From contig NW_027361677.1 in NCBI RefSeq assembly GCF_039654945.1, forward strand, positions 21,762,001 through 21,826,000: DNA of 64,000 nt, given 5' to 3'. Origin of the DNA: Dendrobates tinctorius (Eukaryota). The translations under genes were made by a program, and so were the position numbers. The notes beneath the pieces are model-generated. The model saw nothing but the letters and a program-made list of their open reading frames with translations. It was not told where the DNA came from and did no database searches. Below, piece by piece: positions 5,053-50,438 of this stretch (position 1 is its first letter; each line of letters begins with the position of its first letter).

Positions 5053-5148
5053 CGAGATCGTCCCCTTCTTCCACACAGGCGAAGAGCCGCATGATGCGCA
5101 GAAGTTTGGAGTTCTCCTTCGCACATTTGAAAGGTCGCTGGATTAAAA
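5053..5148 (-). CDS. TERF2: TERF2 exon 2 (TRFH)
   Basis: (I)LIQRPFKCAKENSKLLRIMRLFACVEEGDDL; ttacag| and |gtaagt; too short to appear in the ORF track. Confidence 0.94.
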
Positions 5149-5306
5149 CTGTAATAAAAAAAAATTAGAGGAGACAAATGAGACAGAAGCGCGGCCGGCG
5201 ACATTTCTGGGATTCGCTATTTTAAAGCTGAATGATTGTTAGCCCCAACTACATGGATTTAAGTGAGAAAAACAAAAAACGGTCCCAAAAGGAACAACCC
5301 CTTTAA

Positions 5307-5778
5307 AGGGAATCTGTCACCAGAAGTTGGCGGCCTGTGTAAATGGCCTGTGTTTCTTCTTTTTTTCTCCACTCTATCCGTGGCCCCAGTCCGCGATCTT
5401 TTCCAGAATTCTAGTAGTTCTACTCCATAGTTTGCGCATGCGCACAGCTATCTTGCCAAGCGCAGTATGCTTTGCCCAACTGCGGGCAAAGCCGAAAATC
5501 ATTACTGCACATGGTCCACTATGTCACGGAACATACTGTACCGGCGCATGCGCAGTAATGATTTTTTGCTTTGCCCGCAGTTGGGCAAAGCATACTGCGC
5601 GTGCACAAGGCAAGATAGCTTTGCGCACGTGCGAACTATGGAGTACAACTACTAGAATTCCGGAAAAGATCGCGGACGGGGGCCACGGATGGAGTGGAGA
5701 AAAAAAGAAGAAACACCGCCCATCGGACCGGACACAGGCCATTTACATAGGCCGCCAACTTCCGGTGACAGATTCCCT
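5307..5778. mobile_element. TTAA-flanked palindromic MITE (T2/Kolobok-like)
   Basis: ttaa|AGGGAATCTGTCACC...GGTGACAGATTCCCT|ttaa; the arms are near-complementary over almost the full length. Confidence 0.85.
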
Positions 5779-6482
5779 TTAATTATGGGTTTGGAAAAAA
5801 GTCAGCAAGGCATTATGGGACATGTAGTTCAGAGCACATAAATCCGTCACTGTGATATATTCTCTGCACTCTACAGCCGACGCCCGAGCCTAACCGCAGC
5901 GATCGGAGCACTTTAACCCCTTAGATGCCACAGTCAAATGACACCGCAGCATTTAAGGGGATGGAAATGGAGGAAAGTGTCCCTTCCGATATGATTGCAG
6001 GGGTGCCAATGGCGATATCATCACTGCCAGTGGTCTAATGAAGACCACCTGAGTCTGCCACGTTCGTACACCTAAGACTGGTCATTTTACAATACAGTGC
6101 AATATTACAGATAACAAAAAATAATATTTTTCAAATATTTAAAAAAAAAAAAATTCCTTTAACACCCCCTCATGATCTGCTCCCAGGACGTAAAAATAAT
6201 TAATAAAAAACAACAGTAAAAGTAAAAAAGTCCAGTAATAATGCGCCACCTGCTGGCAACTTCCAGCAAAAACAACATTGGTAAAACTGCTGTAAGGCTG
6301 TGTGCACACGATGCAGATTTGCAGCGGATTTTACCGCTCAGAAACATTGCATTTCTGCATTGTGATGTACAGTAGCCTTAAAATCAATGTTAAAAAAAAA
6401 CGATGTGCAATCATTTGACCTGCGGATTTCTTCCATTCTGCGCGGAAAAATCCGCAGGGCAAAAAGTACGTCTGTACTCAGC

Positions 6483-9400
6483 CTAATAGTGCGCCACCTG
6501 CTGGCAACTAGCAGTATGTAAATAACATAACCTGTAACAGTGCGCCACCTGCTGGCGCCTTCCAGTAAATAACATATTGGTAGAACAATACGGTAATGCG
6601 CCACCTGCTGGCAACTTGCAGTAAGTAGATAACATCCTGAAATAGTGCGCCACCTGCTGGCGCCTTCCTGTACATGAATAATATATCCGGTAATAGTGCG
6701 CCACTTGCTGGCGCCTTCCTGTACATGAATAATATATCCGGTAATAGTGCGCCACCTGCTGGCGCCTTCCTGTACATGAATAATATATCCGGTAATAGTG
6801 CGCCACCTGCTGGCGCCTTCCTGTACATAAATTACATATCCTGTAACAGTGCACCACCTGCTGGCACCTTCCTGTACATAAATAATATATCCGGTAATAG
6901 TGCGCCACCTGCTGGCACCTTCCTGTACATGAATAATATATCCGGTAATAGTGCACCACCTGCTGGCACCTTCCTGTACATGAATAATATATCCTGTAAC
7001 AGTGCGCCACCTGCTGGCACCTTCCTGTACATGAATAATAAATCCTGTAACAGTGCGCCACCTGCTGGCACCTTCCTGTACATGAATAATATATCCTGTA
7101 ACAGTGCGCCACCTGCTGGCACCTTCCTGTACATGAATAATATATCCTGTAACAGTGCGCCACCTGCTGGCGCCTTCCTGTACATGAATAATATATCCGG
7201 TAATAGTGCGCCACCTGCTGGCACCTTCCTGTACATGAATAATATATCCTGTAATAGTGCGCCACCTGCTGGCGCCTTCTGTACATAAATAATATATCCG
7301 GTAATAGTGCGCCACCTGCTGGCGCCTTCCTATACATAAATACCATATCCTGTAACAGTGTGCCACCTGCTGACGCTTTCCTGTACATAAATAATATATC
7401 CTGTAACAGTGCGCCACCTGCTGGCGCCTTCCTGTACATAAATAATATATCCGATAATAGTGCGCCACCTGCTGGCACCTTCCTGTACATAAATAATATA
7501 TCCTGTAACAGTGCGCCACCTGCTGGCGCCTTCCAGTACATAAATAATATATCCGGTAATAGTGCGCCACCTGCTGGCGCCTTCCTGTACATAAATAATA
7601 TATCCTGTAACAGTGCGCCACCTGCTGGCACCTTCCTGTACATGAATAATATATCCGGTAATAGTGCGCCACCTGCTGGCGCCTTCCTGTACATGAATAA
7701 TATATCCGGTAATAGTGCGCCACCTGCTGGCACCTTCCTGTACATGAATAATATATCCTGTAACAGTGCGCCACCTGCTTGCACCTTCCTGTACATGAAT
7801 AATATATCCTGTAACAGTGCGCCACCTGCTGGCGCCTTCCTGTACATGAATAATATATCCGGTAATAGTGCGCCACCTGCTGGCACCTTCCTGTACATGA
7901 ATAATATATCCGGTAATAGTGCGCCACCTGCTGGCACCTTCCTGTACATGAATAATATATCCGGTAATAGTGCGCCACCTGCTGGCGCCTTCCTGTACAT
8001 GAATAATATATCCGGTAATAGTGCGCCACCTGCTGGCGCCTTCCTGTACATGAATAATATATCCGGTAATAGTGCGCCACCTGCTGGCACCTTCCTGTAC
8101 ATGAATAATATATCCGGTAATAGTGCGCCACCTGCTGGCACCTTCCTGTACATGAATAATATATCCGGTAATAGTGCGCCACCTGCTGGCACCTTCCTGT
8201 ACATAAATAATATATCCTGTAACAGTGCGCCACCTGCTGGCACCTTCCTGTACATGAATAATATATCCTGTAACAGTGCGCCACCTGCTGGCGCCTTCCT
8301 GTACATGAATAATATATCCGGTAACAGTGCGCCACCTGCTGGCGCCTTCCTGTACATGAATAATATATCCGGTAACAGTGTGCCACCTGCTGGCGCCTTC
8401 CTGTACATGAATAATATATCCGGTAACAGTGTGCCACCTGCTGGCGCCTTCCTGTACATAAATAATATATCCGGTAACAGTGTGCCACCTGCTGGCGCCT
8501 TCCTGTACATGAATAATATATCCGGTAACAGTGCGCCACCTGCTGGCGCCTTCCTGTACATGAATAATATATCCGGTAACAGTGCGCCACCTGCTGGCGC
8601 CTTCCTGTACATAAATAATATATCCGGTAATAGTGCGCCACCTGCTGGCGCCTTCCTGTACATAAATAATATATCCGGTAATAGTGCGCCACCTGCTGGC
8701 GCCTTCCTGTACATAAATAATATATCCGGTAACAGTGCGCCACCTGCTGGCGCCTTCCTGTACATGAATAATATATCCGGTAACAGTGCGCCACCTGCTG
8801 GCGCCTTCCTGTACATGAATAATATATCCGGTAACAGTGCGCCACCTGCTGGCGCCTTCCTGTACATGAATAATATATCCGGTAATAGTGCGCCACCTGC
8901 TGGCACCTTCCTGTACATAAATAATATATCCGGTAATAGTGCGCCACCTGCTGGCGCCTTCCTGTACATGAATAATATATCCGGTAATAGTGCGCCACCT
9001 GCTGGCGCCTTCCTGTACATGAATAATATATCCTGTAACAGTGCGCCACCTGCTGGCACCTTCCTGTACATGAATAATATATCCTGTAACAGTGCGCCAC
9101 CTGCTGGCACCTTCCTGTACATGAATAATATATCCTGTAACAGTGCGCCACCTGCTGGCACCTTCCTGTACATGAATAATATATCCTGTAACAGTGCGCC
9201 ACCTGCTGGCGCCTTCCTGTACATGAATAATATATCCGGTAATAGTGCGCCACCTGCTGGCACCTTCCTGTACATGAATAATATATCCTGTAATAGTGCG
9301 CCACCTGCTGGCGCCTTCCTGTACATAAATAATATATCCGGTAATAGTGCGCCACCTGCTGGCGCCTTCCTATACATAAATACCATATCCTGTAACAGTG

Positions 9401-12400
9401 TGCCACCTGCTGACGCTTTCCTGTACATAAATAATATATCCTGTAACAGTGCGCCACCTGCTGGCACCTTCCTGTACATAAATAATATATCCGATAATAG
9501 TGCGCCACCTGCTGGCACCTTCCTGTACATGAATAATATATCCTGTAACAGTGCGCCACCTGCTGGCGCCTTCCTGTACATAAATAATATATCCGGTAAT
9601 AGTGCGCCACCTGCTGGCGCCTTCCTGTACATAAATAATATATCCTGTAACAGTGCGCCACCTGCTGGCACCTTCCTGTACATGAATAATATATCCGGTA
9701 ATAGTGCGCCACCTGCTGGCACCTTCCTGTACATGAATAATATATCCTGTAACAGTGCGCCACCTGCTGGCACCTTCCTGTACATGAATAATATATCCGG
9801 TAACAGTGCGCCACCTGCTGGCGCCTTCCTGTACATGAATAATATATCCGGTAATAGTGCGCCACCTGCTGGCACCTTCCTGTACATGAATAATATATCC
9901 TGTAATAGTGCGCCACCTGCTGGCGCCTTCCTGTACATAAATAATGTATCCGGTAATAGTGCGCCACCTGCTGGCGCCTTCCTATACATAAATACCATAT
10001 CCTGTAACAGTGTGCCACCTGCTGACGCTTTCCTGTACATAAATAATATATCCTGTAACAGTGCGCCACCTGCTGGCACCTTCCTGTACATAAATAATAT
10101 ATCCGATAATAGTGCGCCACCTGCTGGCACCTTCCTGTACATGAATAATATATCCTGTAACAGTGCGCCACCTGCTGGCGCCTTCCTGTACATAAATAAT
10201 ATATCCGGTAATAGTGCGCCACCTGCTGGCGCCTTCCTGTACATAAATAATATATCCTGTAACAGTGCGCCACCTGCTGGCACCTTCCTGTACATGAATA
10301 ATATATCCGGTAATAGTGCGCCACCTGCTGGCACCTTCCTGTACATGAATAATATATCCTGTAACAGTGCGCCACCTGCTGGCACCTTCCTGTACATGAA
10401 TAATATATCCGGTAATAGTGCGCCACCTGCTGGCGCCTTCCTGTACATGAATAATATATCCGGTAATAGTGCGCCACCTGCTGGCACCTTCCTGTACATG
10501 AATAATATATCCTGTAACAGTGCGCCACCTGCTTGCACCTTCCTGTACATGAATAATATATCCTGTAACAGTGCGCCACCTGCTGGCACCTTCCTGTACA
10601 TGAATAATATATCCGGTAATAGTGCGCCACCTGCTGGCACCTTCCTGTACATGAATAATATATCCGGTAATAGTGCGCCACCTGCTGGCGCCTTCCTGTA
10701 CATAATATATCCGGTAATAGTGCGCCACCTGCTGGCACCTTCCTGTACATGAATAATATATCCGGTAATAGTGCGCCACCTGCTGGCACCTTCCTGTACA
10801 TGAATAATATATCCGGTAATAGTGCGCCACCTGCTGGCACCTTCCTGTACATGAATAATATATCCGGTAATAGTGCGCCACCTGCTGGCACCTTCCTGTA
10901 CATAAATAATATATCCTGTAACAGTGCGCCACCTGCTGGCGCCTTCCTGTACATGAATAATATATCCGGTAACAGTGCGCCACCTGCTGGCGCCTTCCTG
11001 TACATGAATAATATATCCGGTAACAGTGCGCCACCTGCTGGCGCCTTCCTGTACATGAATAATATATCCGGTAACAGTGCGCCACCTGCTGGCGCCTTCC
11101 TGTACATGAATAATATATCCGGTAACAGTGTGCCACCTGCTGGCGCCTTCCTGTACATAAATAATATATCCGGTAACAGTGCGCCACCTGCTGGCGCCTT
11201 CCTGTACATGAATAATATATCCGGTAACAGTGCGCCACCTGCTGGCGCCTTCCTGTACATGAATAATATATCCGGTAACAGTGCGCCACCTGCTGGCGCC
11301 TTCCTGTACATAAATAATATATCCGGTAATAGTGCGCCACCTGCTGGCGCCTTCCTGTACATAAATAATATATCCGGTAATAGTGCGCCACCTGCTGGCG
11401 CCTTCCTGTACATAAATAATATATCCGTTAACAGTGCGCCACCTGCTGGCGCCTTCCTGTACATGAATAATATATCCGGTAACAGTGCGCCACCTGCTGG
11501 CGCCTTCCTGTACATGAATAATATATCCGGTAACAGTGCGCCACCTGCTGGCGCCTTCCTGTACATGAATAATATATCCGGTAACAGTGCGCCACCTGCT
11601 GGCGCCTTACTGTACATAAATAATATATACGGTAACAGTGCGCCACCTGCTGGCGCCTTACTGTACATAAATAATATATCCGGTAACAGTGCGCCACCTG
11701 CTGGCGCCTTCCTGTACATGAATAATATATCCGGTAATAGTGCGCCACCTGCTGGCGCCTTCCTGTACATGAATAATATATCCGGTAATAGTGCGCCACC
11801 TGCTGGCGCTTTCCTGTACATGAATAATATATCCGGTAATAGTGCGCCACCTGCTGGCACCTTCCTGTACATGAATAATATATCCGGTAATAGTGCGCCA
11901 CCTGCTGGCGCCTTCCTGTACATAAATAATATATCCGGTAATAGTGCGCCACCTGCTGGCGCCTTCCTGTACATAAATAATATATCCGGTAACAGTGCGC
12001 CACCTGCTGGCGCCTTCCTGTACATGAATAATATATCCGGTAACAGTGCGCCACCTGCTGGCGCCTTACTGTACATAAATAATATATCCGGTAACAGTGC
12101 GCCACCTGCTGGCGCCTTACTGTACATAAATAATATATCCGGTAACAGTGCGCCACCTGCTGGCGCCTTCCTGTACATGAATAATATATCCGGTAATAGT
12201 GCGCCACCTGCTGGCGCCTTCCTGTACATAAATAATATATCCGGTAATAGTGCGCCACCTGCTGGCGCCTTCATGTACATGAATAATATATCCTGTAACA
12301 GTGCGCCACCTGCTGGCACCTTCCTGTACATGAATAATATATCCTGTAACAGTGCGCCACCTGCTGGCGCCTTCCTGTACATGAATAATATATCCGGTAA

Positions 12401-12732
12401 TAGTGCGCCACCTGCTGGCGCCTTCCTGTACATAAATAATATATCCGGTAATAGTGCGCCACCTGCTGGCGCCTTCCTGTACATGAATAATATATCCGGT
12501 AACAGTGCGCCACCTGCTGGCGCCTTCCTGTACATAAATAATATATCCGGTAACAGTGCGCCACCTGCTGGCGCCTTCCTGTACATAAATAATATATCCG
12601 GTAATAGTGCGCCACCTGCTGGCGCCTTCCTGTACATGAATAATATATCCTGTAACAGTGCGCCACCTGCTGGCGCCTTCCTGTACATGAATAATATAGC
12701 CGGTAACAGTGCGCCACCTGCTGGCGCCTTCC
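6483..12732. repeat. 51-bp minisatellite, ~120 copies, nearly all containing a CTCF-consensus core (CCAGCAGGTGGCGC on -)
   Basis: Unit gtaatagtgcgccacctgctggcgccttcctgtacatgaataatatatccg; degenerate copies at 6483-6650; array ends ~25 bp from the donor site of the TERF2 exon at 12758. Confidence 0.97.
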
Positions 12733-12757
12733 AGTGCAGCACTTGCCCGCTCCTTAC

Positions 12758-12905
12758 TGGACACGATGTCCCGGATCTCCGCGAAGTCTTCCTTGCGGCA
12801 GTTCTTGAAGGCGTCCACGTACAGATGGAAAAAGTAATCCAACACCCAGTGGTTGATCAGAGGCTCCAGTCTCAGCAGGCTGCAGCCCTCGGCGCTGAAC
12901 TCCAT
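12758..12905 (-). CDS. TERF2: TERF2 first TRFH-coding exon
   Basis: MEFSAEGCSLLRLEPLINHWVLDYFFHLYVDAFKNCRKEDFAEIRDIVS; donor A|gtaagg; an acceptor-like gtaatag lies 8 nt upstream of the ATG. Confidence 0.93.
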
Positions 12906-12949
12906 CCTGCACCCTATTACAACAAAAATAATAAGTCTGCCGCGAAATG

Positions 12950-13392
12950 GCCCCACTTCCGGTGATGCTGTCATGTGACCTGGATGTTGACGTCGGCCAT
13001 GATGGGAAGGGCGGAAGTATATAGTTGTGATTTTTGTATTATTATTATTATTATTGCCTTTTTTACCTATAAACACTTTTCTCCTAATGAGATGCGTGCA
13101 GCATATATGTTACAGATACAGTTTGACACAGTTTTGCGTGCCCACATCAAACATGGCTGCCGGAGCCATTTTTCTCTCTGTAGATTCTAATTGGTTGATG
13201 GCCGGATTGAACCGGCGGGGCTAGTGATTGGATGATTGGTTTGCATGCATCCCACCTTTTTTGAAGGTGATTGGTTGTCGCCTTGGAGACCTCACCTGTG
13301 TCCGTGAGCCGAGGGTCTGAGGCGGCACTGCTGTTACGGAAGCCGGGAGTAGGCATATCAACGAGTTACGTAACGCGTTTTGCACACCGGCA
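12950..13392. promoter_or_regulatory. Bidirectional TERF2/CYB5B promoter region
   Basis: ETS-type cggaagt/acttccgg (~12955, ~13012), YY1-like aacatggc/gccattt (~13150-13172), several ATTGG boxes (~13190-13275), palindrome GTTACGTAAC at 13365-13374. Confidence 0.7.
13296..13356 (-). CDS. TERF2: Putative extra upstream TERF2 exon (coding or 5'UTR)
   Basis: ATG 13356, MPTPGFRNSSAASDPRLTDT, strong donor CAG|GTGAGG; splicing to the acceptor before 12913 gives G-C-R in frame with Met 12905. Confidence 0.45.
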
Positions 13393-13536
13393 ATGGCGAA
13401 CGGTGAAGGCGGCTCCAGCGAGGAGCCTGAGGTGACTTACTACAGCCTGGAAGATGTGAGGAAGAGAAACAGCGCCGAAGAGCTGTGGCTGGTGATCCAC
13501 GGCCGGGTGTACGATATCACCCGCTTTGTGGAAGAG
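13393..13536 (+). CDS. CYB5B: Cytochrome b5 type B (outer mitochondrial membrane) exon 1
   Basis: MANGEGGSSEEPEVTYYSLEDVRKRNSAEELWLVIHGRVYDITRFVEE|gtgggt. Confidence 0.97.
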
Positions 13537-13673: not shown

Positions 13674-16090
13674 AGTATGGGGCGTCCCCGGTGTATGGCC
13701 GGTCTCTGGTATAGCGGGGCGTCCCCGGTGTATGGCCGGTCTCTGGTATAGCGGGGCGTCCCCGGTGTATGGCCGGTCTCTGGTATAGCGGGGCGTCCCC
13801 GGTGTATGGCCGGTCTCTGGTATAGCGGGGCGTCCCCGGTGTATGGCCGGTCTCTGGTATAGCGGGGCGTCCCCGGTGTATGGCCGGTCTCTGGTATAGC
13901 GGGGCGTCCCCGGTGTATGGCCGGTCTCTGGTATAGCGGGGCGTCCCCGGTGTATGGCCGGTCTCTGGTATAGCGGGGCGTCCCCGGTGTGTATGGCCGG
14001 TCTCTGGTATAGCGGGGCGTCCCCGGTGTGTATGGCCGGTCTCTGGTATAGCGGGGCGTCCCCGGTGTGTATGGCCGGTCTCTGGTATAGCGGGGCGTCC
14101 CCGGTGTGTATGGCCGGTCTCTGGTATAGCGGGGCGTCCCCGGTGTGTATGGCCGGTCTCTGGTATAGCGGGGCGTCCCCGGTGTGTATGGCCGGTCTCT
14201 GGTATAGCGGGGCGTCCCCGGTGTGTATGGCCGGTCTCTGGTATAGCGGGGCGTCCCCGGTGTGTATGGCCGGTCTCTGGTATAGCGGGGCGTCCCCGGT
14301 GTGTATGGCCGGTCTCTGGTATAGCGGGGCGTCCCCGGTGTGTATGGCCGGTCTCTGGTATAGCGGGGCGTCCCCGGTGTGTATGGCCGGTCTCTGGTAT
14401 AGCGGGGCGTCCCCGGTGTGTATGGCCGGTCTCTGGTATAGCGGGGCGTCCCCGGTGTGTATGGCCGGTCTCTGGTATAGCGGGGCGTCCCCGGTGTGTA
14501 TGGCCGGTCTCTGGTATAGCGGGGCGTCCCCGGTGTGTATGGCCGGTCTCTGGTATAGCGGGGCGTCCCCGGTGTGTATGGCCGGTCTCTGGTATAGCGG
14601 GGCGTCCCCGGTGTGTATGGCCGGTCTCTGGTATAGCGGGGCGTCCCCGGTGTGTATGGCCGGTCTCTGGTATAGCGGGGCGTCCCCGGTGTGTATGGCC
14701 GGTCTCTGGTATAGCGGGGCGTCCCCGGTGTGTATGGCCGGTCTCTGGTATAGCGGGGCGTCCCCGGTGTGTATGGCCGGTCTCTGGTATAGCGGGGCGT
14801 CCCCGGTGTGTATGGCCGGTCTCTGGTATAGCGGGGCGTCCCCGGTGTGTATGGCCGGTCTCTGGTATAGCGGGGCGTCCCCGGTGTGTATGGCCGGTCT
14901 CTGGTATAGCGGGGCGTCCCCGGTGTGTATGGCCGGTCTCTGGTATAGCGGGGCGTCCCCGGTGTGTATGGCCGGTCTCTGGTATAGCGGGGCGTCCCCG
15001 GTGTGTATGGCCGGTCTCTGGTATAGCGGGGCGTCCCCGGTGTGTATGGCCGGTCTCTGGTATAGCGGGGCGTCCCCGGTGTGTATGGCCGGTCTCTGGT
15101 ATAGCGGGGCGTCCCCGGTGTGTATGGCCGGTCTCTGGTATAGCGGGGCGTCCCCGGTGTGTATGGCCGGTCTCTGGTATAGCGGGGCGTCCCCGGTGTG
15201 TATGGCCGGTCTCTGGTATAGCGGGGCGTCCCCGGTGTGTATGGCCGGTCTCTGGTATAGCGGGGCGTCCCCGGTGTGTATGGCCGGTCTCTGGTATAGC
15301 GGGGCGTCCCCGGTGTGTATGGCCGGTCTCTGGTATAGCGGGGCGTCCCCGGTGTGTATGGCCGGTCTCTGGTATAGCGGGGCGTCCCCGGTGTGTATGG
15401 CCGGTCTCTGGTATAGCGGGGCGTCCCCGGTGTGTATGGCCGGTCTCTGGTATAGCGGGGCGTCCCCGGTGTGTATGGCCGGTCTCTGGTATAGCGGGGC
15501 GTCCCCGGTGTGTATGGCCGGTCTCTGGTATAGCGGGGCGTCCCCGGTGTGTATGGCCGGTCTCTGGTATAGCGGGGCGTCCCCGGTGTGTATGGCCGGT
15601 CTCTGGTATAGCGGGGCGTCCCCGGTGTGTATGGCCGGTCTCTGGTATAGCGGGGCGTCCCCGGTGTGTATGGCCGGTCTCTGGTATAGCGGGGCGTCCC
15701 CGGTGTGTATGGCCGGTCTCTGGTATAGCGGGGCGTCCCCGGTGTGTATGGCTGGTCTCCGGTATAATGAAGCGTCCCCCGATATATGGGGCGTCTTCTG
15801 TATATGGCCGGTCTCTGGTATAATGAAGCATCCCCCCGGTATATGGTCTGTCTCCTGTATAATGGGGCGTCTCTGGTATATGGCTGGTATATGGCTGGTC
15901 TCTGGTATAATGGGGTGTCTCCTGTATAATGGGGCGTCCCCGGTATATGGCCGGTCTCTGGTATAATGGGGTGTCTCCTGTATAATGGGGTGTCCCCGAT
16001 ATATGGCCGGTCTCTGGAATAATGGGGTGTCCCTGGTATATGGCCGGTCTCTGCTATAACGGGGCGTCCCCGGTTTATGGCCCGTCTCTG
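13674..16090. repeat. CpG-rich 37/39-bp minisatellite in CYB5B intron 1
   Basis: ~8 units of 37 bp, then ~45 apparently identical 39-bp units (gtatggccggtctctggtatagcggggcgtccccggtgt), then degenerate units from ~15750. Confidence 0.97.
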
Positions 16091-16289
16091 CGCTGCTCCA
16101 CATGTGCATTGGTCAGTGTCTGACAACGGTTACCCAAGTAAGGACAGTCAGTGCCAGAATCACGGATATTCAAGGCTCATAGTGTCTGATCACAAGAGTT
16201 ACCGCAGAGGAAATTCTGAATAATGTTCCACTTTTATGATAGAAAGGGGTCCGATCCCACCGAGTGTCTCCGCTGTGTAGTCACAGACC

Positions 16290-18978: not shown

Positions 18979-20482
18979 CACAGAAAACCAGAGAGGTTGG
19001 TAACTAAGCAGATGCAGACCCCTGATCCCATCCACACAACTAGCAGTAGCCGTGGAGCGTACCTACGATTATCCTAGATGCCTCGGCACAGCCGGAGAGC
19101 TAACTAAGCCTAAAGCAAGAAAGGGGAAATCTAAACTGCCCCGGAGCAGACCCCCAAAGGAATAGATAGCCCCCAAACATATACTGTCAGTGAGACAAGA
19201 TGAAAACACAAACGCAGGCAGAAAAATAGACTGAGCAAATGATGGGGCCAAAACTGACTAGACAGGACAGGAAAGGAAAGACACTGTCTGCAATCACGCA
19301 AAAAAAGTCCAACACGTCTGATGCACAAAAAACACTGAAGTCGCACGACTTGGCCCCCACTATATCAGCACTCTGGTATGTTCTGAAAGCAAAGCAAAAA
19401 GAGACCAATATAACAGGGGACAAAACAAACTGGCACATGCAGTAACATGGACGGTGATTCAGCACAGCCCCAGCCAGAGCTGGCTGACCCGCACAAAGCA
19501 GAGATAGACAAAACCAGATCAAATGCAAACAGAATAACAAATGAACCACTTGGGCCTGTTTCACACATTCGTCTTTCAGATCAGTTGTTAACCGCCAAAA
19601 TGGCGGACAACGGATCCGTCGGCAGGCTGACAGGAACGTATGGCACCGAACCGTTGTTTAGAAGGATCCGGCGAAGGCTGAATTTTACACGTGCCCGGAA
19701 AGAGAGAGAGAGAGAGAGACTCCAGCCGCCAGAAGTGGATTTAGGGTTAAACTTCCGTCAAATGCAATTCTTCTGGGCATGCGCAGTGTACAAATGCTGA
19801 TCTGACCACCAAAAAAAGTTTCATTGTCCATCCTGTCCTGTCAGCGGACGCCAAAATTTTGGCTGATCTGTAAAAAACGAATCCAACGGATGACCATCCG
19901 TCAAGATCCGCTGATAATGCAAGTCAATGGGGGAAAAAAAGGATCCGCCAAAAAAAATGGCGGATCCGTGTTTTTTTTTTTTTTTTTTGCAAAACGGCGG
20001 ATTTTGACTGATGGAGACAAACGGATGTGTGAAAGAGGCCTTAGCTGAACCATGCAGGGAAAGAGCAGGAGACATCAGACCTCAGAAGGCACAGGAAGAA
20101 AATCACCAGCAGGGATAGAGGGAGTCAGCTGTCTTAAATCCCAATCAGAAACACCAGATCTCCAATCGTCTTCCTCATTATAAGGTGGCAAGCCTCTTTC
20201 AATCAGATCAGCTCCACTACCTCCAGTAACCACCAGAGGGAGTCCAGAAACAGAACTCACAACTCCTCTGTCAATCTGACCAGCTCCACTACCTCCAGTA
20301 AACCACCACAGGGAGTCCAGAAACAGAACTCACAACCCCTCTGTCAATCTGACCAGCTCCACTACCTCCAGTAAACCACCACAGGGAGTCCAGAAACAGA
20401 ACTCACAACCCCTCTGTCAATCTGACCAGCTCCACTACCTTCAGTAATCACCAGAGGGAAGCCAGAGAGAGAATTCACAACA
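18979..20482 (-). mobile_element. LTR-like element, copy 1 (truncated at the left end, interrupted by a MITE)
   Basis: Reverse-complement match to 37714-38586; terminus TGTTGTGAAT at 20482; internal 72-73-bp unit repeated 4 times. Confidence 0.8.
19553..20040. mobile_element. PIF/Harbinger-like MITE inserted in LTR copy 1
   Basis: TIRs GGCCTGTTTCACACA / TGTGTGAAAGAGGCC; flanks ttg and tta; absent from the paralogous copy near 38007. Confidence 0.85.
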
Positions 20483-22473: not shown

Positions 22474-24157
22474 TATTAGTTATTCAAGCCACAATTTTCT
22501 AATTTTTCTTCCCCTGCTCTGCTTCCTTTGCCCTTTTTTTTTTTTTTTGTTTTTTTTTGTTTTCCCTCTTCTTCCTTGTTTTCCTTCCCTTCTTGGCCAC
22601 ATCTAAGCCCCTTTTTTCTACCCCACTTGGGTCTCTAATGGGCCCAATCCACTGCTCCCCGGTTGGCCTACCTGCCCCTCGCAGCCTCTCCTGCCCTTAT
22701 GACTTCTCCTGCCCTGCCTCCATCGTACAGCTCTTGGAAGAACCTAAGATTCTACTTTATGGTGTTCACACACCTCCTAATATAATGGGCAAGGAGCGGG
22801 TGCCTGGCCGTGCCAATGTCCTCCCCAGTCGGTGTGTTGTTGAGGACACGTCACATACCATTCTCAACAGTCACCACATGAGGGCGCCGTGAGCCTGTCA
22901 GCTCTTTGACAACCATGTTCCGCACTTAGCACGCGGCTTACCCATGGAATAATAAACTGCCCTAAGGGAGGGTGGACTGCTGCTTTCGACAGGGTGAAAA
23001 GTTTGCCATGCCCCGTACCTTGCGTTCACACAGCAGTAAATTATGTGCGTGCGCAACAGACCTCCTGTGACATTAATTAAAGAGATGACACTACAGAGCC
23101 GAGCCCCACGCGTCCTGAGTTGCGTTATTCTGCTCAGACCTTCTCATGATGAGCCTATTATTGGGGTGTGGTGTTATTGTGTGCGCAGATTGTTGTTTAT
23201 GCGGCCGTGCTTCTGTTATGTGTTGATAATGGCCTCGGGGTCCGTTCATGATGGTCACTATTTCTGAATGGGACGCCGCTATGAAATCTGTCCGAAACTG
23301 AAATTTAATTAAAACCTTTAATACTGAAGGATTTGTCCAGGACTTGACAACAAGCGAGTTCAGCTTTTATTTTACAACTTGACGTGCTTTTGCCGTTCAT
23401 TTTATCGCCTTCCCCCTTGCCTCAATTCCAGCTCCTATGGCCGTGCTGATCCTTGACGTGTTCTGCAGTTGTGGTGCGTTGTACATGCGCCGGTGACCGC
23501 TGCAGCCAAACACGGCGGAGGAGACGCAGCTCTTCACCAGGTCTCTGGATCGGTGGTGGAGGTGATGGTCTCATAGGTTGGACCCCCATCAGACTTTAAA
23601 ACTAGCAGTGTTTCAGCCTGTCGGAGAGAGAGTGCGGCTGTAGGTGTCCGAATTTTGTAAATGGAGAGAAAAAGGGTCTTCACAGCTTTCCAACCTCTGT
23701 CATTTGCAATGGATGGCGCCTGTATTATGCTGATGAAAGTTGCTGCCAAAAATATGGTTTCCATACCGCTTGTCTCGCCAATTGTCACCATCGCTTCTGC
23801 TATGAAAGCGAGCCATTCAGGTTGTAGAGGACGTTAATTGCGGGGTGGGGAGGTCAGATCACGTCAGATTTACTCGCCCTGGGCTTGGTCATGTGATCTC
23901 CCATCCAGAACGGTTTCCAACTTTCACTGTAATTTTTCTTGCAACATTTCTTCCCTCCTTCAGGCATCGATACTCATCCCTATACTCGTGACCTATACCA
24001 TAGATCTTGCATATACCATGGCAATTTAGTGTCCCTACGAGAAAACATCAGATGGTAGAGCGGGGCGCTTTTATTCTTTTTGCAACAGTACCTTCCCAAA
24101 GTACAGCTTTGCTTTCTCCTTGCAAGCATCAACAATACCAGACATGTGAAACCATAA

Positions 24158-24500
24158 GGGTGTGTGCACACGCTGTTGATCTGCTGCGGATCCGCAGACA
24201 GTGGACAGTACCATGTAAGTCTATGGGATTTACAATCCGCAGTGCACATGCTGCAGTTTTTTCACTGCGGAAAAGCTGCGGTTTTGAATCCGCAGAAAGA
24301 ATTGACATGTCACTTCTTTCTGCGGATTCAGCTGCGGTTTGCCATCTTCTCCATTGTCCAGGTGTCAATCCGCAGGTAAAACCGCTGGCCAATCCGCAGG
24401 TAAAACCGCTGGCCAATCCGCAGGTCAATTTACCTGCGGTTTTACCTGCGGATCCACACGGGAAAATCCGCTGGTGAATCCGCAGCGTGTGCACATAGCC
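24158..24500. mobile_element. PIF/Harbinger-like MITE
   Basis: taa|GGGTGTGTGCACACGCTG...CAGCGTGTGCACATAGCC|taa; related to 48376-48754 and to the fragment at ~6296. Confidence 0.8.
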
Positions 24501-25180
24501 TAAAACATTTTTTTGGAAAAAAGGGCAATTTGATCGAATTATTTTGTTGAAACAGTTATTTTATGTCTGAAAAATAATTACTATTCTGAACAAAAAAACA
24601 TTATGGTTTAAACTTAGAAAAATCACAAACAATAAATGGGTTTCAATCCTTCAGTGAATAAACAGCAATAGTACATGAAAATGTGTTTTGAATTAGTACA
24701 TAGGAATGGCTTTCATGCTTAATGGGTGGGGTGTCCATTAGTTGTGGGGGGTCAGACTTTCACAAAAGGGCGATCTCTTGGGATGGCTTTCCCTGGCATT
24801 ATCAGATGGGTCGCTACGAGCAGAATTGGGGATGTGAGGGGGGCAGGCAGTCATTGTTTTTAGTGTTTACAGCATAGCATCACCATTGTATGTCTGACAC
24901 AATCTGCTGAGAAATACTTCACATTTCCTTTTTTTTATTTTGTTTAATTGTGGGTGATAATGGAAGTGGCGATTGAATTATTTCATATGCAGGTGATTCA
25001 CACCATTGTGTTCAGATGGTATAAGTTCACACTGCAGGTGATTACAGGAAATAACGTATTATCTGTGCTTCATTTACACTAATGATGTGATCAGCTCCGG
25101 GAAAAAAATCTGCCCCATTCCGTTCTTATAGCTGCGGTGTAGTAAATGATCTCCCTCTGTACCCAGTGTTATAACCAAAG

Positions 25181-26056
25181 TTACATCCTGTATTATACCC
25201 CAGAGCTGCACTCACTATTCTGCTGGTGGAGTCACTGTGTACATACATTACATTACTGATCCTGAGTTACCTCCTGTATTATACTCCAGAGCTGCACTCA
25301 CTATTCTGCTGGTGCAGTCACTGTGTACATACATTACATTACTGATCCTGAGTTACATCCTGTATTATACTCCAGAGCTGCACTCACTATTCTGCTGGTG
25401 CAGTCACTGTGTACATACATTACATTACTGATCCTGAGCTACATCCTGTATTATACTCCAGAGCTGCACTCACTATTCTGCTGGTGCAGTCACTGTGTAC
25501 AAACATTACTGATCCTGAGTTACATCCTGTATTATACCCCAGAGCTGCACTCACTATTCTGCTGGTGCAGTCACTGTGTACAAACATTACTGATCCTGAG
25601 TTATACCCTGTATTATACTCCAGAGCTGCACTCACTATTCTGCTGGTGCAGTCACTGTGTACAAACATTACTGATCCTGAGTTATACCCTGTATTATACC
25701 CCAGAGCTGCACTCACTATTCTGCTGGTGCAGTCACTGTGTACAAACATTACTGATCCTGAGTTATACCCTGTATTATACTCCAGAGCTGCACTCACTAT
25801 TCTGCTGGTGCAGTCACTGTGTACATACATTACATTACTGATCCTGAGTTACCTCCTGTATTATACCCCAGAGCTGCACTCACTATTCTGCTGGTGCAGT
25901 CACTGTGTACATACATTACATTACTGATCCTGAGTTACATCCTGTATTATACCCCAGAGCTGCACTCACTACTCTGCTGGTGCAGTCACTGTGTGCATAC
26001 ATTACAGATCCTGAGTTGCCTCCTGTATTATACTCCAGACCTGCACTCAGTATTAC
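25181..26056 (+). repeat. 86-bp (77-bp variant) satellite array, ~10 copies
   Basis: Unit ttacatcctgtattatactccagagctgcactcactattctgctggtgcagtcactgtgtacatacattacattactgatcctgag. Confidence 0.95.
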
Positions 26057-26652: not shown

Positions 26653-26781
26653 CATCCAGGAGGAGAGGAAGTCCTGTTCGAACAGGCCGGCGCCGATGCC
26701 ACGGAGAGCTTTGAAGATGTCGGCCATTCTGTTGATGCACGGGAGATGCTGAAGCAGTATTACGTGGGAGATCTGCATCCG
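26653..26781 (+). CDS. CYB5B: CYB5B exon 2 (heme-binding HPGG motif and second axial His)
   Basis: [43 protein letters not shown]; cgcag| and |gtaaga. Confidence 0.98.
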
Positions 26782-37713: not shown

Positions 37714-38632
37714 TGTTGTGAATTCTCTCTCTGGCTTCCCTCTGGTGATTACTGAAGGTAGTGGAGCTGGTCAGATTGACAGAGGGGTTGTGAGTTCTCT
37801 TTCTGGGCTCCCTGTTGTGGTTACTGGAGGTAGTGGAGCTGATCTGATTGACAGAGGCTTGCCACCTGATAATGAGGAAGACGCTTCGAGAGCTGGGGTT
37901 TCTGATTGGGATTTAAGACAGCTGACTCCCTCTATCCCTGCTGGTGATTTTCTTCCTGTGCCTTCTGAGGTCTGATGTCTCCTGCTCTTTCCCTGCATGA
38001 TTAAGCTAAGTGGTTAATGTGCTATTCTGTTTGCATTTGATCTGGTTTTGTCTATCTCTGCTTTGTGCGGGTCAGCCAGCTCCGGCTGGGGCTGTGCTGA
38101 ATCACCGCTCATATGTTGCTGCTTGTGCCAGTTTGTTTTGTCCCCTGTTATATTGGTCTCTTTTTGCTTTGCTTTCAGAATATACCAGAGTGCTGATATA
38201 GTGGGGGCGAAGTCGTGCGACTTCAGTGTTTTTTGTGCATCAGATGTGTTCGACTTTTTGCAGAGTTTTTTGCGTGATTGCAGACAGTGTCTTAACTTTC
38301 CTGTCTAGTCAGTGTGGGCCCCATCATTTGCTCAGTCTATTTTTCTGCCTGCGTTTGTGTTTTCATCTTGTCTCACCGACAATATATGTTTGGTGGCTAT
38401 CTATTCCTTTGGGGTCTGCTCCGGGGCAGTTTAGATTTCCTCTTTCTTCCTTTAGGCTTAGTTAGCTCTCTGGCTGTGCCGAGGCGTCTAGGATCATCGT
38501 AGGTATGCTCCACGGCTACTGCTAGTTGTGTGGATAGGATCAGGGGTCTGCAATCCGCTTAGTTACCAACCTCTCTGGTTTTCTGTGGCTTAGAATGGGC
38601 CTGCTATCCTCCTCGGTGACCCATTCATAAGA
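37714..38632 (+). mobile_element. Solo LTR-like element, copy 2, inserted in DIRS ORF1
   Basis: TGTTGTGAAT...ATTCATAAGA imperfect inverted termini; 6-bp TSD GGACAA (37708-37713 and 38633-38638). Confidence 0.8.
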
Positions 38633-47155: not shown

Positions 47156-48375
47156 CAAACTATCTTGTCCTAACATGGCAAATTATAACTTGTCCTTGCT
47201 GATAGGTTGGACCCTCGCTGATCTTGAGAACAGGGGTCTGAAATGCCCCATTTGAATGGAGCTGTGTGCTCCCACTCCATTCATTGTCTAGGGGTCAACT
47301 GGAAATGCAGTAGCAAAGTGCAGCACTCAGCTATCTCCAGCAGTCCTATAGACAATTAATGGCGCGCTCGTCACTCCATTCAAACGTGGTGCTTCAGGAT
47401 CGAGATCTATGGACTGGTAGGACACCCAGCGATCTGCAAGTTATCACCTATCCCCAAGTCTTCCAGTGCCACCAGTCTAAGTGGACCACCGGACTGGTGG
47501 AACTGGAGCACTGGGTGACGGACCGAAAACTAGTTGGGTCAATCACATTATCTGTCTACATCTTATTCATTTACTGCAAAACTAAAAATAATGTCTATAT
47601 ATCGAAGTAGCTTTCACATGTTCAATATCAGCCCTGCCCTGTTCATGCACTACAGGACCATGAAGGACCAGGCACTGTGCCGGCGACGTGGTACCACCTA
47701 TCGGCCATCCAGGGCTCGGTACGGCTTGCCAAAAACGATGTTGTGCAAGGGGTTAATTTTTTAGCAATGACAATAGAGAGAAGGATCAACCTGTTAACTT
47801 GGAAGGACACAGCCTGAGAGCTGCCAGACAGGTTTAGGCAGAGAAGCAAGGAGGTATTCTCTTGAATGATCCTAGCTCCGGACTGATAAGCTGCAGTGTG
47901 ACCTGGGGGGACACAAACAACTGACCCTGTCCACATAGAGAGGGCAGCGCGGGTCTAACACAGTGCTACTGTGCCCATGCCAAAATAGCCGAACCGATCA
48001 GGACTCTTCGTGAGAAGTTGAAGGGGCTGCTGTTCTTGGATTTCAAGGAAAACATAAAGAGTCTTATTGATTCCTATAAGCATTGCTCTCACCTAGAGAG
48101 GCTGACAAGCGGCAGGCGGTCCGGCACCCAGCAGCGTTATGCGCTCCCTCTCTGAGGACATCTTTACTGCTCCACGGCTGGCAAGTCGATGGCGATACGG
48201 TGGTTTTGTTCCCGGAGTGAGAAGGAGAGGTAAGAAAAAGTAAAGGAAATGTCAAATTTTGGCAGAAACGTATTGCTTCTAAGGGTATGTGCACGGTTGT
48301 TTTGTTTTTTTTGACAAGCGGGTCTGATTAAAAAAAAAATGCTTAAAAATCTCTTGCTATACATTTCTATTGTAA

Positions 48376-48754
48376 GGCTGTGTGCACACGCTGCGGATTT
48401 TGCTGCGGTTCCGCAGCGGTTTTGGCCGCTGCGGACCCGCAGCAGTTTCTGCTGCGGTGTACAGTACCATGATTCCCTATGGGAATCAAAAACCGCAGTG
48501 CAGACAGTGCGGAATTTTCCGCGCGGATTATCTGCGGTTTTCAATCCGCAGAAAGAATTGACATGTCAATTCTTTCTGCGGATTCTCCTGCGGTTTGCCA
48601 TCTCCTCCATTGAGGAGATGAAAAACCGCAGGGCAAAATCGCAGAGCAATCCGCAGGTAAAACCGCAGGTCTTTTGACCTGCGGTTTCACCTGCGGATTG
48701 TACAAAATCCGCGCGGATGAATCCGCACCTTTTCCGCAGCGTGTGCACACAGCC
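48376..48754. mobile_element. PIF/Harbinger-like MITE
   Basis: GGCTGTGTGCACACGCTGCGG...CCGCAGCGTGTGCACACAGCC perfect TIRs; flanks taa and tca. Confidence 0.85.
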
Positions 48755-49551
48755 TCAAACCACTTTTGCTGCTCATTTGAGCGTTTCCTTTCCGCTCTCT
48801 TTTTTGAAAAACATCAAATAGGAAAAAAAAAGAGAAAGTGAATGTGACATTTTTGAATCGGATCCAAAAGAGACACTGGCTGGTCAAAAAGTTTCAGGGG
48901 AAAAAAAAGTTTTGAAAAGTTTTAAAAACTTGTTTGAAAAAGAAAGCCACCCACCTCCAAAAAATCTTTATCTATACTGCTCATTGACTTAATTTGTCAA
49001 CTAATTACTTCTATGTTGTAAAAAGTTAATAAACCGGCTTCAGACGTCATATGAAAAAATCATGCCTGGCTCCACATGCTCATCGTAGGGCAGACAAGTG
49101 GAAGCGCTGCCTTCTATCGCGTGCGCTATTAAAGTGTGCTGCAATAGTGCACGCTGCAAATTGGCACATTGGTAACGGTCCGCTCCATTGACATGCACAG
49201 CACACGGACTGAAAACACGCTCGTCTGAAGGAGCCCAATAAAAATCCTAAAAATAAACGTATCTGCACATTTTTGTATAAAGTGCTTAAGAAGAAAATTG
49301 GCTAAAAAAAGGCCCAGTAGTTTCTCAGATGCAGGGAGCGGGTCAGAACCAGAGTGCAATGACAGATATAGCGAACATCTGCCATATTAGAGTACATTAT
49401 ATTAAGGGTATTGTATTGATAATGATTCCCTGCTCCATATGCATTTGTCTATATCCATTGATGATTGCCATTTTTCAATTAATATTCAAAATCCAGATAA
49501 AATTTACATAAAAGTTAACTTGCAGATACATTACATTATTTACACTGTACT

Positions 49552-50438
49552 TGAGCTACATCTTGTATTATAGTCCAGAGCTGCACTCACTATTCTGCTG
49601 GTGCAGTCACTGTGTACATACATTACATTACTGATCCTGAGTTACATCTTGTATTATAGTCAAGAGCTGCACTCACTATTCTGCTGGTGGAGTCACTGTG
49701 TACATACATACATTACATTACTGATCCTGAGTTACATCCTGTATTATACTTCAGAGCTGCACTCACTATTCTGCTGGTGCAGTCACTGTGTACATACATT
49801 ACATTACTGATCCTGAGTTACACCTGTATTATACTCCAGAGCTGCACTCACTATTCTGCTGGTGCAGTCACTGTGTACATACATTACATTACTGATCCTG
49901 AGTTACATCTTGTATTATACTCCAGAGCTGCACTCACTATTCTGCTGGTGGAGTCACTGTGTACATACATACATTACATTACTGATCCTGAGTTACATCC
50001 TGTATTATACTCCAGAGCTGCACTCACTATTCTGCTGGTGCAGTCACTGTGTACGTACATTACATTACTGATCCTGAGTTACATCTTGTCTTATAATCAA
50101 GAGCTGCACTCACTATTCTGCTGGTGCAGTCACTGTGTACATACATTACATTACTGATCCTGAGTTACATCCTGTATTATACCCCAGAGCTGCACTCACT
50201 ATTCTGCTGGTGCAGTCACTGGGTACATACATTACATCACTGATCCTGAGTTACATCCTGTATTATACCCCAGAGCTGCACTCACTATTCTGCTGGTGCA
50301 GTCACTGTGTACATACATTACATGACTGATCCTGAGTTACCTCCTGTATTATACCCCAGAGCTGCACTCACTATTCTGCTGGTGGAGTCACTGTGTACAT
50401 ACATTACATTACTGATCCTGAGTTACATCCTGTATTAT
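49552..50438 (+). repeat. 86-bp satellite array (same family as 25181-26056)
   Basis: Direct tandem repetition, ~10 copies. Confidence 0.95.

Follow-up and report, generated by a model that had tools for sequence, protein, structure and literature searches.

The first intron of TERF2 in the frog Dendrobates tinctorius raises the question of how a sequence resembling the core of the CTCF-binding site came to be repeated some 120 times beside a promoter, always in the same orientation, and what such an array might do there. Engineered arrays have been the main means of studying how the strength of a chromatin boundary depends on how many co-oriented CTCF sites there are and how far apart they lie. 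The locus was analyzed within a 64-kb window, i.e., the whole stretch of DNA under study (64,000 nucleotides), to which all coordinates refer. Our reading, to which we assign a probability of roughly 0.55, is that the array is a young, locus-specific VNTR that grew from a conserved CTCF-type site, and that it is a putative CTCF-bound, one-directional boundary.

Tandem Repeats Finder described the array by a period of 51 bp, 122.6 copies, 94% matches and 0% indels; as a long, head-to-tail series of units in the range of 10-100 bp, most of them free of indels, it is a minisatellite. The core, written as the IUPAC consensus CCASYAGRKGGCRS, was matched exactly at 116 places in the 64-kb window, 115 inside the array and one in a detached copy, and every one of them is on the minus strand; 0.05 matches were expected by chance, and the maximum in 100 shuffles was one. 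When up to three mismatches were allowed, the 16-mer TGCGCCACCTGCTGGC was present in 124 units, and the distance between units was exactly 51 bp in 118 of the 123 intervals. For scoring, a manually entered version of the JASPAR matrix MA0139.1 was used (maximum possible score, 27.2 bits). With this matrix 116 units scored at least 18 bits, and the best score on the plus strand of the array was 7.2 bits, so that the motifs are co-oriented on the minus strand; a shuffled 48-kb sequence had no site at 14 bits or above. The low plus-strand score also led us to reject a second, opposite CTCF site formed by the near-palindrome. Inspection of the unit by eye revealed no upstream (ZF9-11) CTCF motif. 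The original prediction of about 120 co-oriented CTCF consensus sites in a minisatellite of about 6 kb, for which scoring with MA0139 had been suggested, is thus borne out by both measures. Its additional statement, that nearly every unit matches the CTCF core at every position, holds for the 116 exact matches but not for 8 of the 124 units, where changes in the core lower the score to 11.7-15.7 bits.

The original note located the array within TERF2 and next to the promoter shared with CYB5B. Spliced RNA contigs agree with both locations, assigning it to intron 1, of which it makes up 82%. The first motif is encountered 33 nt past the splice donor of exon 1, an exon that agrees with TERF2 of D. 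tinctorius at 100% of positions. The bidirectional promoter carries several ATTGG boxes and the ETS-like CCGGAAGTG, and its ETS-like and E-box motifs are common to Eleutherodactylus. Long open reading frames cross the array because 51 bp equal 17 codons; a coding repeat was nonetheless rejected, since the RNA contigs join exon 1 straight to exon 2. The same contigs document that transcription of an expressed housekeeping gene runs through the array, which may displace CTCF. No known RNA family was found at gathering score in window positions 1-27000.

Table 1. Features of the TERF2/CYB5B locus, in window coordinates.
Feature	Position	Strand	Evidence or remark
51-bp minisatellite, 122.6 units	6484..12732	- (TERF2 sense strand)	Tandem Repeats Finder; CTCF-type core per unit
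Three decayed units, distal (old) array edge	6484..6639	-	Tails ~37% diverged; 16-bp core identical
MITE-like insertion, ~190 bp, separating the outermost unit	6297..6483		Partial matches in the window
Detached decayed unit	6236..6296	-	Exact 14-mer at 6243-6256
Promoter-proximal partial unit, likely ancestral copy	12703..12732	-	14-mer at 12711-12724; aligns to Rhinoderma site
TERF2 intron 1, 7,609 bp	5149..12757	-	Exon 1-exon 2 junction 12758 to 5148, RNA contigs of three runs
Start of TERF2 intron 1 (25 nt, unique), GT donor at 12757-12756	12733..12757	-	RNA contigs end at 12758 and resume in exon 2
TERF2 exon 1, ATG at 12905	12758..12951	-	RNA contig 5' ends at 12917-12951
Bidirectional TERF2/CYB5B promoter, ~370 bp	12952..13319		RNA contig ends; sequence
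CYB5B exon 1, ATG at 13394; exon 2 follows at 26653 after splicing	13320..13536	+	RNA contigs
Unrelated 39-bp x ~62 minisatellite, CYB5B intron 1	13677..16091	+	Tandem Repeats Finder; ~140 nt past exon-1 donor

An assembly artefact was ruled out on two grounds: words of the array were found when sequencing runs of several independent D. tinctorius samples were compared, and sequencing depth fitted the assembled copy number. In a DNA run the depth was 221-533 over the array and 4.15 on the unique flank, a ratio of about 53-128; as the assembly holds 122 copies, this ratio confines the family to the TERF2 locus. The same ratio, together with the lack of any further copy in the window, excluded a fragment of a genome-wide satellite or transposon, and the unit neither recurs at many loci nor lies inside a mobile element, as a transposon-derived dispersed satellite would.

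The presence of a second array across the promoter brings up a different explanation, namely that in this genome sequences just past first exons are hot spots of minisatellite birth, through recombination or replication-transcription conflict at promoters, and that the CTCF site lay in one of them by chance. At most the promoter-nearest copies would then be bound, and the others would be methylated, nucleosomal or cleared by transcription, without architectural effect. Indeed, the two divergent genes carry arrays that are unrelated to each other, and these begin 25 nt past the exon-1 donor in TERF2 and about 140 nt past it in CYB5B, and the one in CYB5B intron 1 had no CTCF matrix match at 10 bits or above. 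It is also in keeping with a neutral origin that tandem arrays account for more than 10% of frog genomes and are thought to grow by unequal crossing-over (PMC10794172). We regard such an origin as possible but rather unlikely, and the variation within the array bears directly on it.

The array displays the signs of unequal exchange that are typical of VNTRs, i.e., a homogenised centre, diverged edges and higher-order blocks. Duplicated blocks were found at shifts of 12 and about 53 units, with no more than two mismatches over 504-718 bp (for example, 9188-9905 versus 9800-10517), and growth of the array is by unequal exchange of single units as well as of blocks of this size range; these duplications are recent, which is equally what a neutral by-product would exhibit. 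Beyond the distal edge, the first ~50 bp of the MITE-like insertion resemble 24155-24501 and 48371-48767 at 77-89% identity.

Four polymorphisms are common among the units, at positions 4 (C/T), 23 (G/A), 37 (G/A) and 50 (G/T), and all four lie outside the 14-mer core (positions 8-21), as had been noted originally; the core variant GGCAC is, again as stated, compatible with the CTCF consensus. In the homogenised part of the array, the 19-bp CTCF footprint contains only 6 of the 35 distinct variants (p = 0.008), and the two common variants in the footprint barely alter the score (19.3 versus 19.2 bits for that at position 23). The 14-mer alone holds 5 of the 35 (p = 0.054), and since this count is borderline it does not serve as main evidence; the comparison of the core with the rest of the unit is based on the decayed edge units and on the ancestral copy across three frog families. 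In the four decayed edge units the tails are 37% diverged from the consensus, while the 16-bp core is intact at 64 of 64 positions (P about 1e-13, or 6e-4 when the units are counted as one lineage). Uniform substitution along the unit, named in advance as an outcome that would speak against CTCF, was therefore not observed, the core being far better kept than the remainder. The locus combines three sequence properties of tandem CTCF-site arrays: a predicted motif per unit, co-orientation, and a motif that is retained as the rest diverges. Under pure neutrality, neither the preservation of the core over the tail in the old edge units nor its depletion of variants in the young part is expected, and the same can be said of the core CpG: of 120 units, 111 retain it, whereas the two other CpGs are retained in 77 and 81.

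A core could also persist for mechanistic reasons, with no protein involved. Single strands may fold at the near-palindrome GCGCCA-N5-TGGCGC and at the palindrome TGTACA inside it, and slippage with short-tract conversion would then repeatedly re-copy the core. The predicted folding of minus-strand single-stranded DNA is consistent with this (-9.4 kcal/mol, z = -3.9, for one unit; -18.4 kcal/mol, z = -4.5, for two). However, folding leaves unexplained why, in the single-copy orthologues of two other families, it is precisely the CTCF positions of high information that are preserved, and the matrix match is one-stranded, with 19 bits on the minus strand and at most 7.2 on the plus; we consider this mechanism very unlikely.

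These orthologues also document the origin of the array. The proximal unit aligned with a site in TERF2 intron 1 of Rhinoderma over 39 nt, ungapped and at 72% identity, a score reached by 0 of 500 shuffles. With the manually entered matrix, the single CTCF-like site scored 15.5 bits in Rhinoderma and 17.8 bits in Engystomops, which have 17 of 17 nt in common. The 14-mer core starts at intron position +34 in Dendrobates, +45 in Rhinoderma and +27 in Engystomops, each time in sense orientation, and in the comparison of the three species the mean matrix information was 1.17 bits at invariant and 0.52 bits at variable positions (p = 0.008). The site thus has the character of a seed, with the same position and orientation across lineages and changes that fall on low-information positions of the motif. 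Judged by alignment and position, the promoter-nearest unit is orthologous to the single, sense-oriented CTCF-like site of the other two frogs. The array is a head-to-tail amplification of a segment of about 51 bp containing a single CTCF-type site, and this seed is kept by the hyloid frogs Rhinoderma and Engystomops, 27-45 nt past the exon-1 donor and in sense orientation.

The same alignment bears on other possible binders. The core contains CAGGTG and CCTGCTGG, which we take to resemble E-box and ZIC consensus sequences, so that the array might be a sink or platform for E-proteins, ZEB or SNAI on the former or ZIC on the latter; competition by such factors at the E-box had been part of the original prediction. 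Although CAGGTG is present, the E-box is not conserved, because the site in Rhinoderma and Engystomops reads AGGGGG instead of AGGTGG. Their site also lacks CCTGCTGG, whereas the CTCF-critical positions are kept, which makes a role of these other factors hardly credible.

Neither the array nor a single CTCF-like site was found at the corresponding TERF2 intron position of Eleutherodactylus and Pristimantis, which implies that the site is dispensable. The annotated TERF2 of Ranitomeya and Phyllobates spans only 7.5 kb, and both genera, judged by gene length, are without the array, a point that would also suit a neutral origin. Together with the lack of an array in Eleutherodactylus and Pristimantis, the short gene indicates that the amplification is young and lineage-specific. 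The amplified state of about 120 copies is not conserved among frogs; the other frogs have a single site here, or no site.

Methylation or heterochromatin is frequent at tandem repeats, which would count against binding. The observed/expected ratio of CpG was 0.80 in the array, 0.93 in its promoter-proximal third and 0.53 in the rest of the window, a retention that favours our reading. A CpG in the flank of the core has decayed from CG to CA in 43 of 118 units, which is compatible with germline methylation. The proposal that methylation of the CpG in GGCG switches the array appears weak, because this sole core CpG is located at CORE position 12 and not at position 2, where methylation of the motif strand dominates inhibition (PMC10325916). 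Position 2 is CpA in the units, so they lack the CpG that distinguishes methylation-switched CTCF sites of the H19-ICR type.

In our reading, the ancestral site would be a working promoter-proximal CTCF site, and many of the 116 strong copies could be occupied by CTCF. The footprint of all 11 CTCF zinc fingers is about 39 bp; the 51-bp spacing exceeds it and would leave room for CTCF at neighbouring units. Every copy would point the N-terminus of CTCF to the TERF2 gene body, i.e., to lower coordinates, and owing to this shared direction the array would act as a stop of high avidity for cohesin coming out of the gene body, and in that direction alone. Loops would be anchored between the array and convergent sites that lie downstream of TERF2, and the 370-bp TERF2/CYB5B promoter would be shielded on the gene-body side. 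The leftward direction originally predicted for the anchor is consistent with an N-terminus at the 3' side of the motif, which ZF1 contacts while ZF8-11 contact the 5' side (PMC10484683). The TAD borders of Xenopus tropicalis carry the vertebrate CTCF motif in convergent orientation, and TADs in this frog need both CTCF and Rad21 (PMC8270788). The array is thus a candidate, provided by nature, for a chromatin boundary that is very strong and acts in one direction. It is conceivable, though we think it improbable, that in this genome CTCF-bound sites trigger tandem amplification of themselves, e.g., when breaks occur or forks stall at occupied sites near promoters, yielding copy-number-tunable, one-directional boundaries. 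The TERF2 array would then be a lineage-specific gain that measurably alters TERF2/CYB5B insulation relative to Ranitomeya and Phyllobates, in which more or less the single-site state would persist.

The frogs offer a natural series of CTCF-type site number at one orthologous TERF2 position: zero in Eleutherodactylus and Pristimantis, one in Rhinoderma and Engystomops, and about 120 near-perfect sites at 51-bp spacing in D. tinctorius, with a TERF2 in Ranitomeya and Phyllobates that is, by gene length, too short for a large array. The array documents the conversion of a conserved regulatory site into a VNTR, and it adjoins the promoter of TERF2, a gene that protects telomeres and is sensitive to dosage. 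Should CTCF bind it, few natural CTCF arrays described so far would be as dense, and it would test whether DNA can be tiled by CTCF in place of nucleosomes; if unbound, it would mean that even perfect motifs at a seemingly permissive location do not suffice for binding. A literature search returned no account of CTCF-motif minisatellites in frogs, and the D. tinctorius genome paper mentions neither tandem repeats nor CTCF; new here are the orthology of the proximal unit to a single-site ancestor, the conservation of the core, and the young, lineage-specific amplification.

Among known systems, the ancestral state resembles the promoter-proximal single CTCF sites of vertebrate genes, against the background of a CTCF/cohesin system that is conserved in frogs (PMC8270788). 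It consists of a lone site in sense orientation, no more than about 50 nt from exon 1. Three families of hyloid frogs retain this site with substitutions that track the information content of the motif, and D. tinctorius differs in having amplified it about 120-fold. Minisatellites from transposon fragments in frog subtelomeres have similar units (52 bp in one example) and likewise grow by unequal exchange (PMC10794172), but the TERF2 unit derives from unique intronic sequence rather than a transposon and, by depth, occupies one locus. Tandem co-oriented CTCF sites, predicted in our case, are shared with DXZ4 and FIRRE; at DXZ4 the direction in which long-range contacts are made depends on how the array is oriented, and the CTCF site persists as the rest of the unit diverges (PMC3491370; bioRxiv 10.1101/165340). 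Those loci have kilobase units with one site per ~3 kb, as opposed to one per 51 bp, and their allele-specific binding on the inactive X, occupancy and architecture have been demonstrated, whereas the TERF2 array is known from sequence. A parallel at minisatellite scale is DXPas34 of mouse Tsix, with 34-bp units and a CTCF site in each (PMC3149622 and references therein). Both are arrays of minisatellite-sized units with a CTCF site (predicted for TERF2) in every unit, both lie just downstream of a promoter in a transcribed region, and in both the number of CTCF sites differs strongly among related species. The DXPas34 units, however, match only loose forms of the CTCF consensus, are CpG-rich and are linked to X-inactivation choice, whereas the TERF2 array has perfect 14/14 core matches, about 120 in number and all co-oriented, in an autosomal frog housekeeping gene, and its single-copy ancestor is visible in other species.

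The 51-bp repeat in intron 1 of TERF2 was resolved by Tandem Repeats Finder as a single array of 122.6 copies, with 94% matches and no indels. The IUPAC core CCASYAGRKGGCRS was found 116 times in the 64-kb window, always on the minus strand, against 0.05 matches expected by chance; 115 of these were inside the array and one was outside it, at 6243-6256. With the 16-mer TGCGCCACCTGCTGGC as anchor, allowing up to 3 mismatches, 124 units were found, spaced by exactly 51 bp in 118 of the 123 intervals. The units were then scored with the JASPAR MA0139.1 count matrix, in a hand-entered copy (maximum possible, 27.2 bits); 116 units scored at least 18 bits, and 8 scored 11.7-15.7 bits. The co-oriented CTCF consensus sites that the original prediction had placed throughout the array were thus indeed found. 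A second, opposite site arising from the near-palindrome GCGCCA-N5-TGGCGC was ruled out, since the plus strand of the array never scored above 7.2 bits. It was also accurately predicted that the common unit variants avoid the core: the four common polymorphisms (unit positions 4, 23, 37 and 50) all fall outside the 14-mer (unit positions 8-21).

The exon adjoining the array, when translated, was 100% identical to the Dendrobates tinctorius TERF2 isoforms (NCBI naming), and a tblastn search with the D. tinctorius protein located every TERF2 exon between 243 and 12974, with the gene running along the minus strand. The limits of exon 1 and intron 1 follow from contigs of three runs behaving as RNA, which break at 12758 and resume in the letters of 5119-5148. 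The array makes up 82% of the intron. Its first unit is just 25 unique nucleotides away from the GT donor, and the 14-mer nearest to exon 1 begins 33 nt past that donor. Array-derived intronic contigs were also present, at low depth, in one run behaving as RNA. As the first exon of CYB5B lies on the plus strand, the two genes form a head-to-head pair, about 370 bp apart, and the predicted location of the array, inside TERF2 and beside a promoter shared with CYB5B, was confirmed by these RNA-like contigs. D. tinctorius and Eleutherodactylus coqui (TERF2 locus L001, 9930-9975) both have, a short distance ahead of the start codon of TERF2, an E-box-like sequence, GGTCACRTGAC, together with an ETS-like motif that reads CCGGAAGTG in the former and CGGGAAGTG in the latter; this stretch is likely the core promoter. 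On the CYB5B side, the unrelated 39-bp minisatellite (core part 99% identical) had no CTCF matrix match of 10 bits or more. It begins close behind the exon-1 donor, and therefore both divergent genes bear an array right behind exon 1.

Features of the TERF2-CYB5B region and of other repeats in the window
Feature	Position	Strand	Remarks
TERF2 exon 1	about 12758-12951	-	RNA-like contigs
TERF2 intron 1, 7,609 bp	5149-12757	-	RNA-like contig junctions
51-bp array	6484-12732		Tandem Repeats Finder
Distal edge of array	6236-6639		four decayed units
MITE-like element, about 190 bp	6297-6483		within old edge of array
Terminal ~50 bp of MITE-like element	24155-24501, 48371-48767		recurs in both orientations
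Tandemly duplicated 12-unit block	9188-9905, 9800-10517		718 bp, at most 2 mismatches
E-box-like and ETS-like motifs	12940-12990	-	upstream of TERF2 start codon
CYB5B exon 1	13320-13536	+	RNA contigs; spliced to 26653
Unrelated 39-bp x ~62 minisatellite	13677-16091		CYB5B side, from ~140 nt past exon-1 donor; 65% G+C
73-bp x 4 array; inverted two-copy relative	20193-20481; 37715-37857		weaker CTCF-matrix matches, 13.7-15.8 bits
86-bp unit, three dispersed arrays	25179-26054, 49552-50438, 54833-55680		about 10 copies each, one inverted
ORFs of 134, 196, 366 and 152 aa	50971-53860	-	resemble fragmented non-LTR retrotransposon reverse transcriptase

Words of the array were present in runs of several independent D. 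tinctorius samples and in none of the runs from a related species. In one DNA run, the unique flank had a word depth of 4.15 and two array units had 221-533, i.e., ~53-128 times the flank, which is a rough figure, as summed contig depth does not equal copy number. Within that roughness, the ratio fits the 122 assembled copies, and together with the absence of further copies of the unit elsewhere in the 64-kb window, it rules out a large dispersed repeat family. The left flank of intron 1 likewise had no repeat partner in the window, except the MITE-like piece. The 73-bp array and its inverted relative are probably parts of a dispersed element.

The main new result concerns the origin of the array, which comparison with the TERF2 loci of four other hyloid frogs (Rhinoderma darwinii, Engystomops pustulosus, Eleutherodactylus coqui and Pristimantis) traces to an old, single CTCF-type site as its apparent seed. 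Intron 1 is free of tandem arrays in all four (for Engystomops, as judged by matrix scan and alignment only). One sense-strand CTCF-type site was found 45 nt into the intron in Rhinoderma (15.5 bits) and 27 nt into it in Engystomops (17.8 bits). The beginning of intron 1 in D. tinctorius aligned with that of Rhinoderma over 39 ungapped nucleotides at 72% identity, a score reached by none of 500 shuffles, and in the 3' half of the site 17 of 17 nucleotides are common to Rhinoderma and Engystomops. When the three species were aligned, 11 matrix positions were invariant, with a mean information of 1.17 bits, and 8 varied, with a mean of 0.52 bits (Mann-Whitney p = 0.008); such invariance at high-information positions is the pattern predicted by CTCF binding-site constraint. 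Since the other two species have AGGGGG in place of the AGGTGG of D. tinctorius, neither the E-box nor a ZIC-like word can be what was conserved. E. coqui and Pristimantis lack a CTCF-type site at this intron position, and each has a strong sense-oriented site deeper in TERF2 (17.4 and 20.7 bits, respectively). In the E. coqui locus, an 804-bp tandem duplication (L001 13454-13540 / 14258-14344 and 13870 / 14674) takes in one exon together with a sense-strand CTCF motif of 17.4 bits. Upstream of TERF2 in Engystomops, an identical plus-strand CTCF motif of 22.8 bits occurs twice (locus L004, positions 39 and 655; 616 bp apart), in the same orientation as the intron-1 site.

Within the array, too, the core is better kept than the rest of the unit. 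The tails of the four edge units are 37% off the consensus tail at aligned positions and 17-38% from one another, whereas their cores are unchanged at all 64 positions (4 x 16), so that substitution in the core does not equal that in the rest of the unit, the equality that had been named as counting against the original prediction. At the tail's rate, unchanged cores have a P of about 1e-13, or 6e-4 with the four units taken as one lineage. Of 35 distinct variants in the young part of the array, just 5 affect the 14-mer (p = 0.054) and 6 the 19-bp matrix footprint (p = 0.008); the common G/A variant at position 23, which lies in the footprint, leaves the score nearly the same (19.3 vs 19.2 bits). 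Of 120 units, 111 retain the core CpG, against 77 and 81 for the two other CpGs, although these counts are not independent because blocks of units were duplicated. Conservation of the core could instead be driven by a hairpin, a reading to which folding gives some support, but which leaves the single-copy orthologous sites unexplained.

When the units were coded by sequence, recurring blocks became visible: besides the tandem 12-unit duplication, 504-bp matches join stretches about 53 units apart. At the distal edge, one decayed unit is severed by the MITE-like insertion, and at the proximal end a partial unit passes into unique intron sequence. Old edges around a homogenised centre are what unequal exchange usually leaves behind. 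As for its age, the annotated TERF2 ranges are 7,559 bp in Phyllobates terribilis and 7,550 bp in Ranitomeya imitator, compared with about 12.7 kb for D. tinctorius TERF2, 6.25 kb of which is array. In both relatives CYB5B is annotated on the other strand a short way upstream, at a distance of about 500 bp in Phyllobates and under 100 bp in Ranitomeya. Judged by these ranges, the two relatives have room for a small array at most; the large amplification is therefore younger than the split from them. Ranitomeya TERF2 proteins (P0030, P0033 and P0005, compared with P0003 and P0009) have an in-frame expansion of a 7-residue, EEPKRGQ-like repeat in the linker that precedes the Myb domain, with about 8-16 copies against one or two in D. 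tinctorius and Phyllobates; it is a coding minisatellite within the array's own gene.

With regard to function, the CTCF core is read by zinc fingers 3-7, its 3' side by ZF1 and its 5' side by ZF8-11, so that the N-terminus, the part that holds cohesin, is placed at the motif's 3' end; the complete footprint covers about 39 bp (PMC10484683). TADs in Xenopus depend on CTCF and Rad21, and their borders bear the same motif in convergent orientation (PMC8270788). The minus-strand motifs would direct their 3' ends towards lower coordinates, i.e., the TERF2 body; cohesin coming from that side would be halted at the array, loops would be anchored between the array and plus-strand sites past the TERF2 3' end, and the promoter and CYB5B would be left beyond this barrier. 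At 51-bp spacing every unit could be sterically filled, only with nucleosomes excluded. We give a CTCF-occupied, directionally acting array a probability of roughly 0.55. A serious rival, of rather low probability, is the neutral amplification of a functional site. It deserves weight because the array is part of an expressed gene and is transcribed through, tandem repeats are often silenced, and the amplified state is not conserved. Tandem arrays that grow through unequal crossing-over are, moreover, generally abundant in frog genomes (PMC10794172).

The methylation switch originally proposed for the core CpG is weak, since inhibition of CTCF binding is dominated by motif-strand methylation at CORE position 2 (PMC10325916), which is CpA in the array units, the sole core CpG being at position 12. 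The CpG observed/expected ratio was 0.80 in the array, 0.93 in its promoter-proximal third and 0.53 elsewhere in the window. These values are consistent with partial shielding from methylation in the germline close to the promoter; block history could also account for them.

Among known systems, DXPas34 comes closest: a 34-bp minisatellite with a CTCF site in each unit that lies downstream of the Tsix promoter and differs among rodents in its number of sites (PMC3149622). DXZ4 and FIRRE are relatives with larger units, in which orientation-dependent architecture has been demonstrated. At the sequence level, the TERF2 array has the features of such arrays: every unit carries a motif, all motifs point the same way, and the motif is preserved where the remainder of the unit has diverged. 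What makes it notable is how perfect and how densely packed its sites are, their position 33 nt from the TERF2 splice donor, and their visible descent from a conserved single site.
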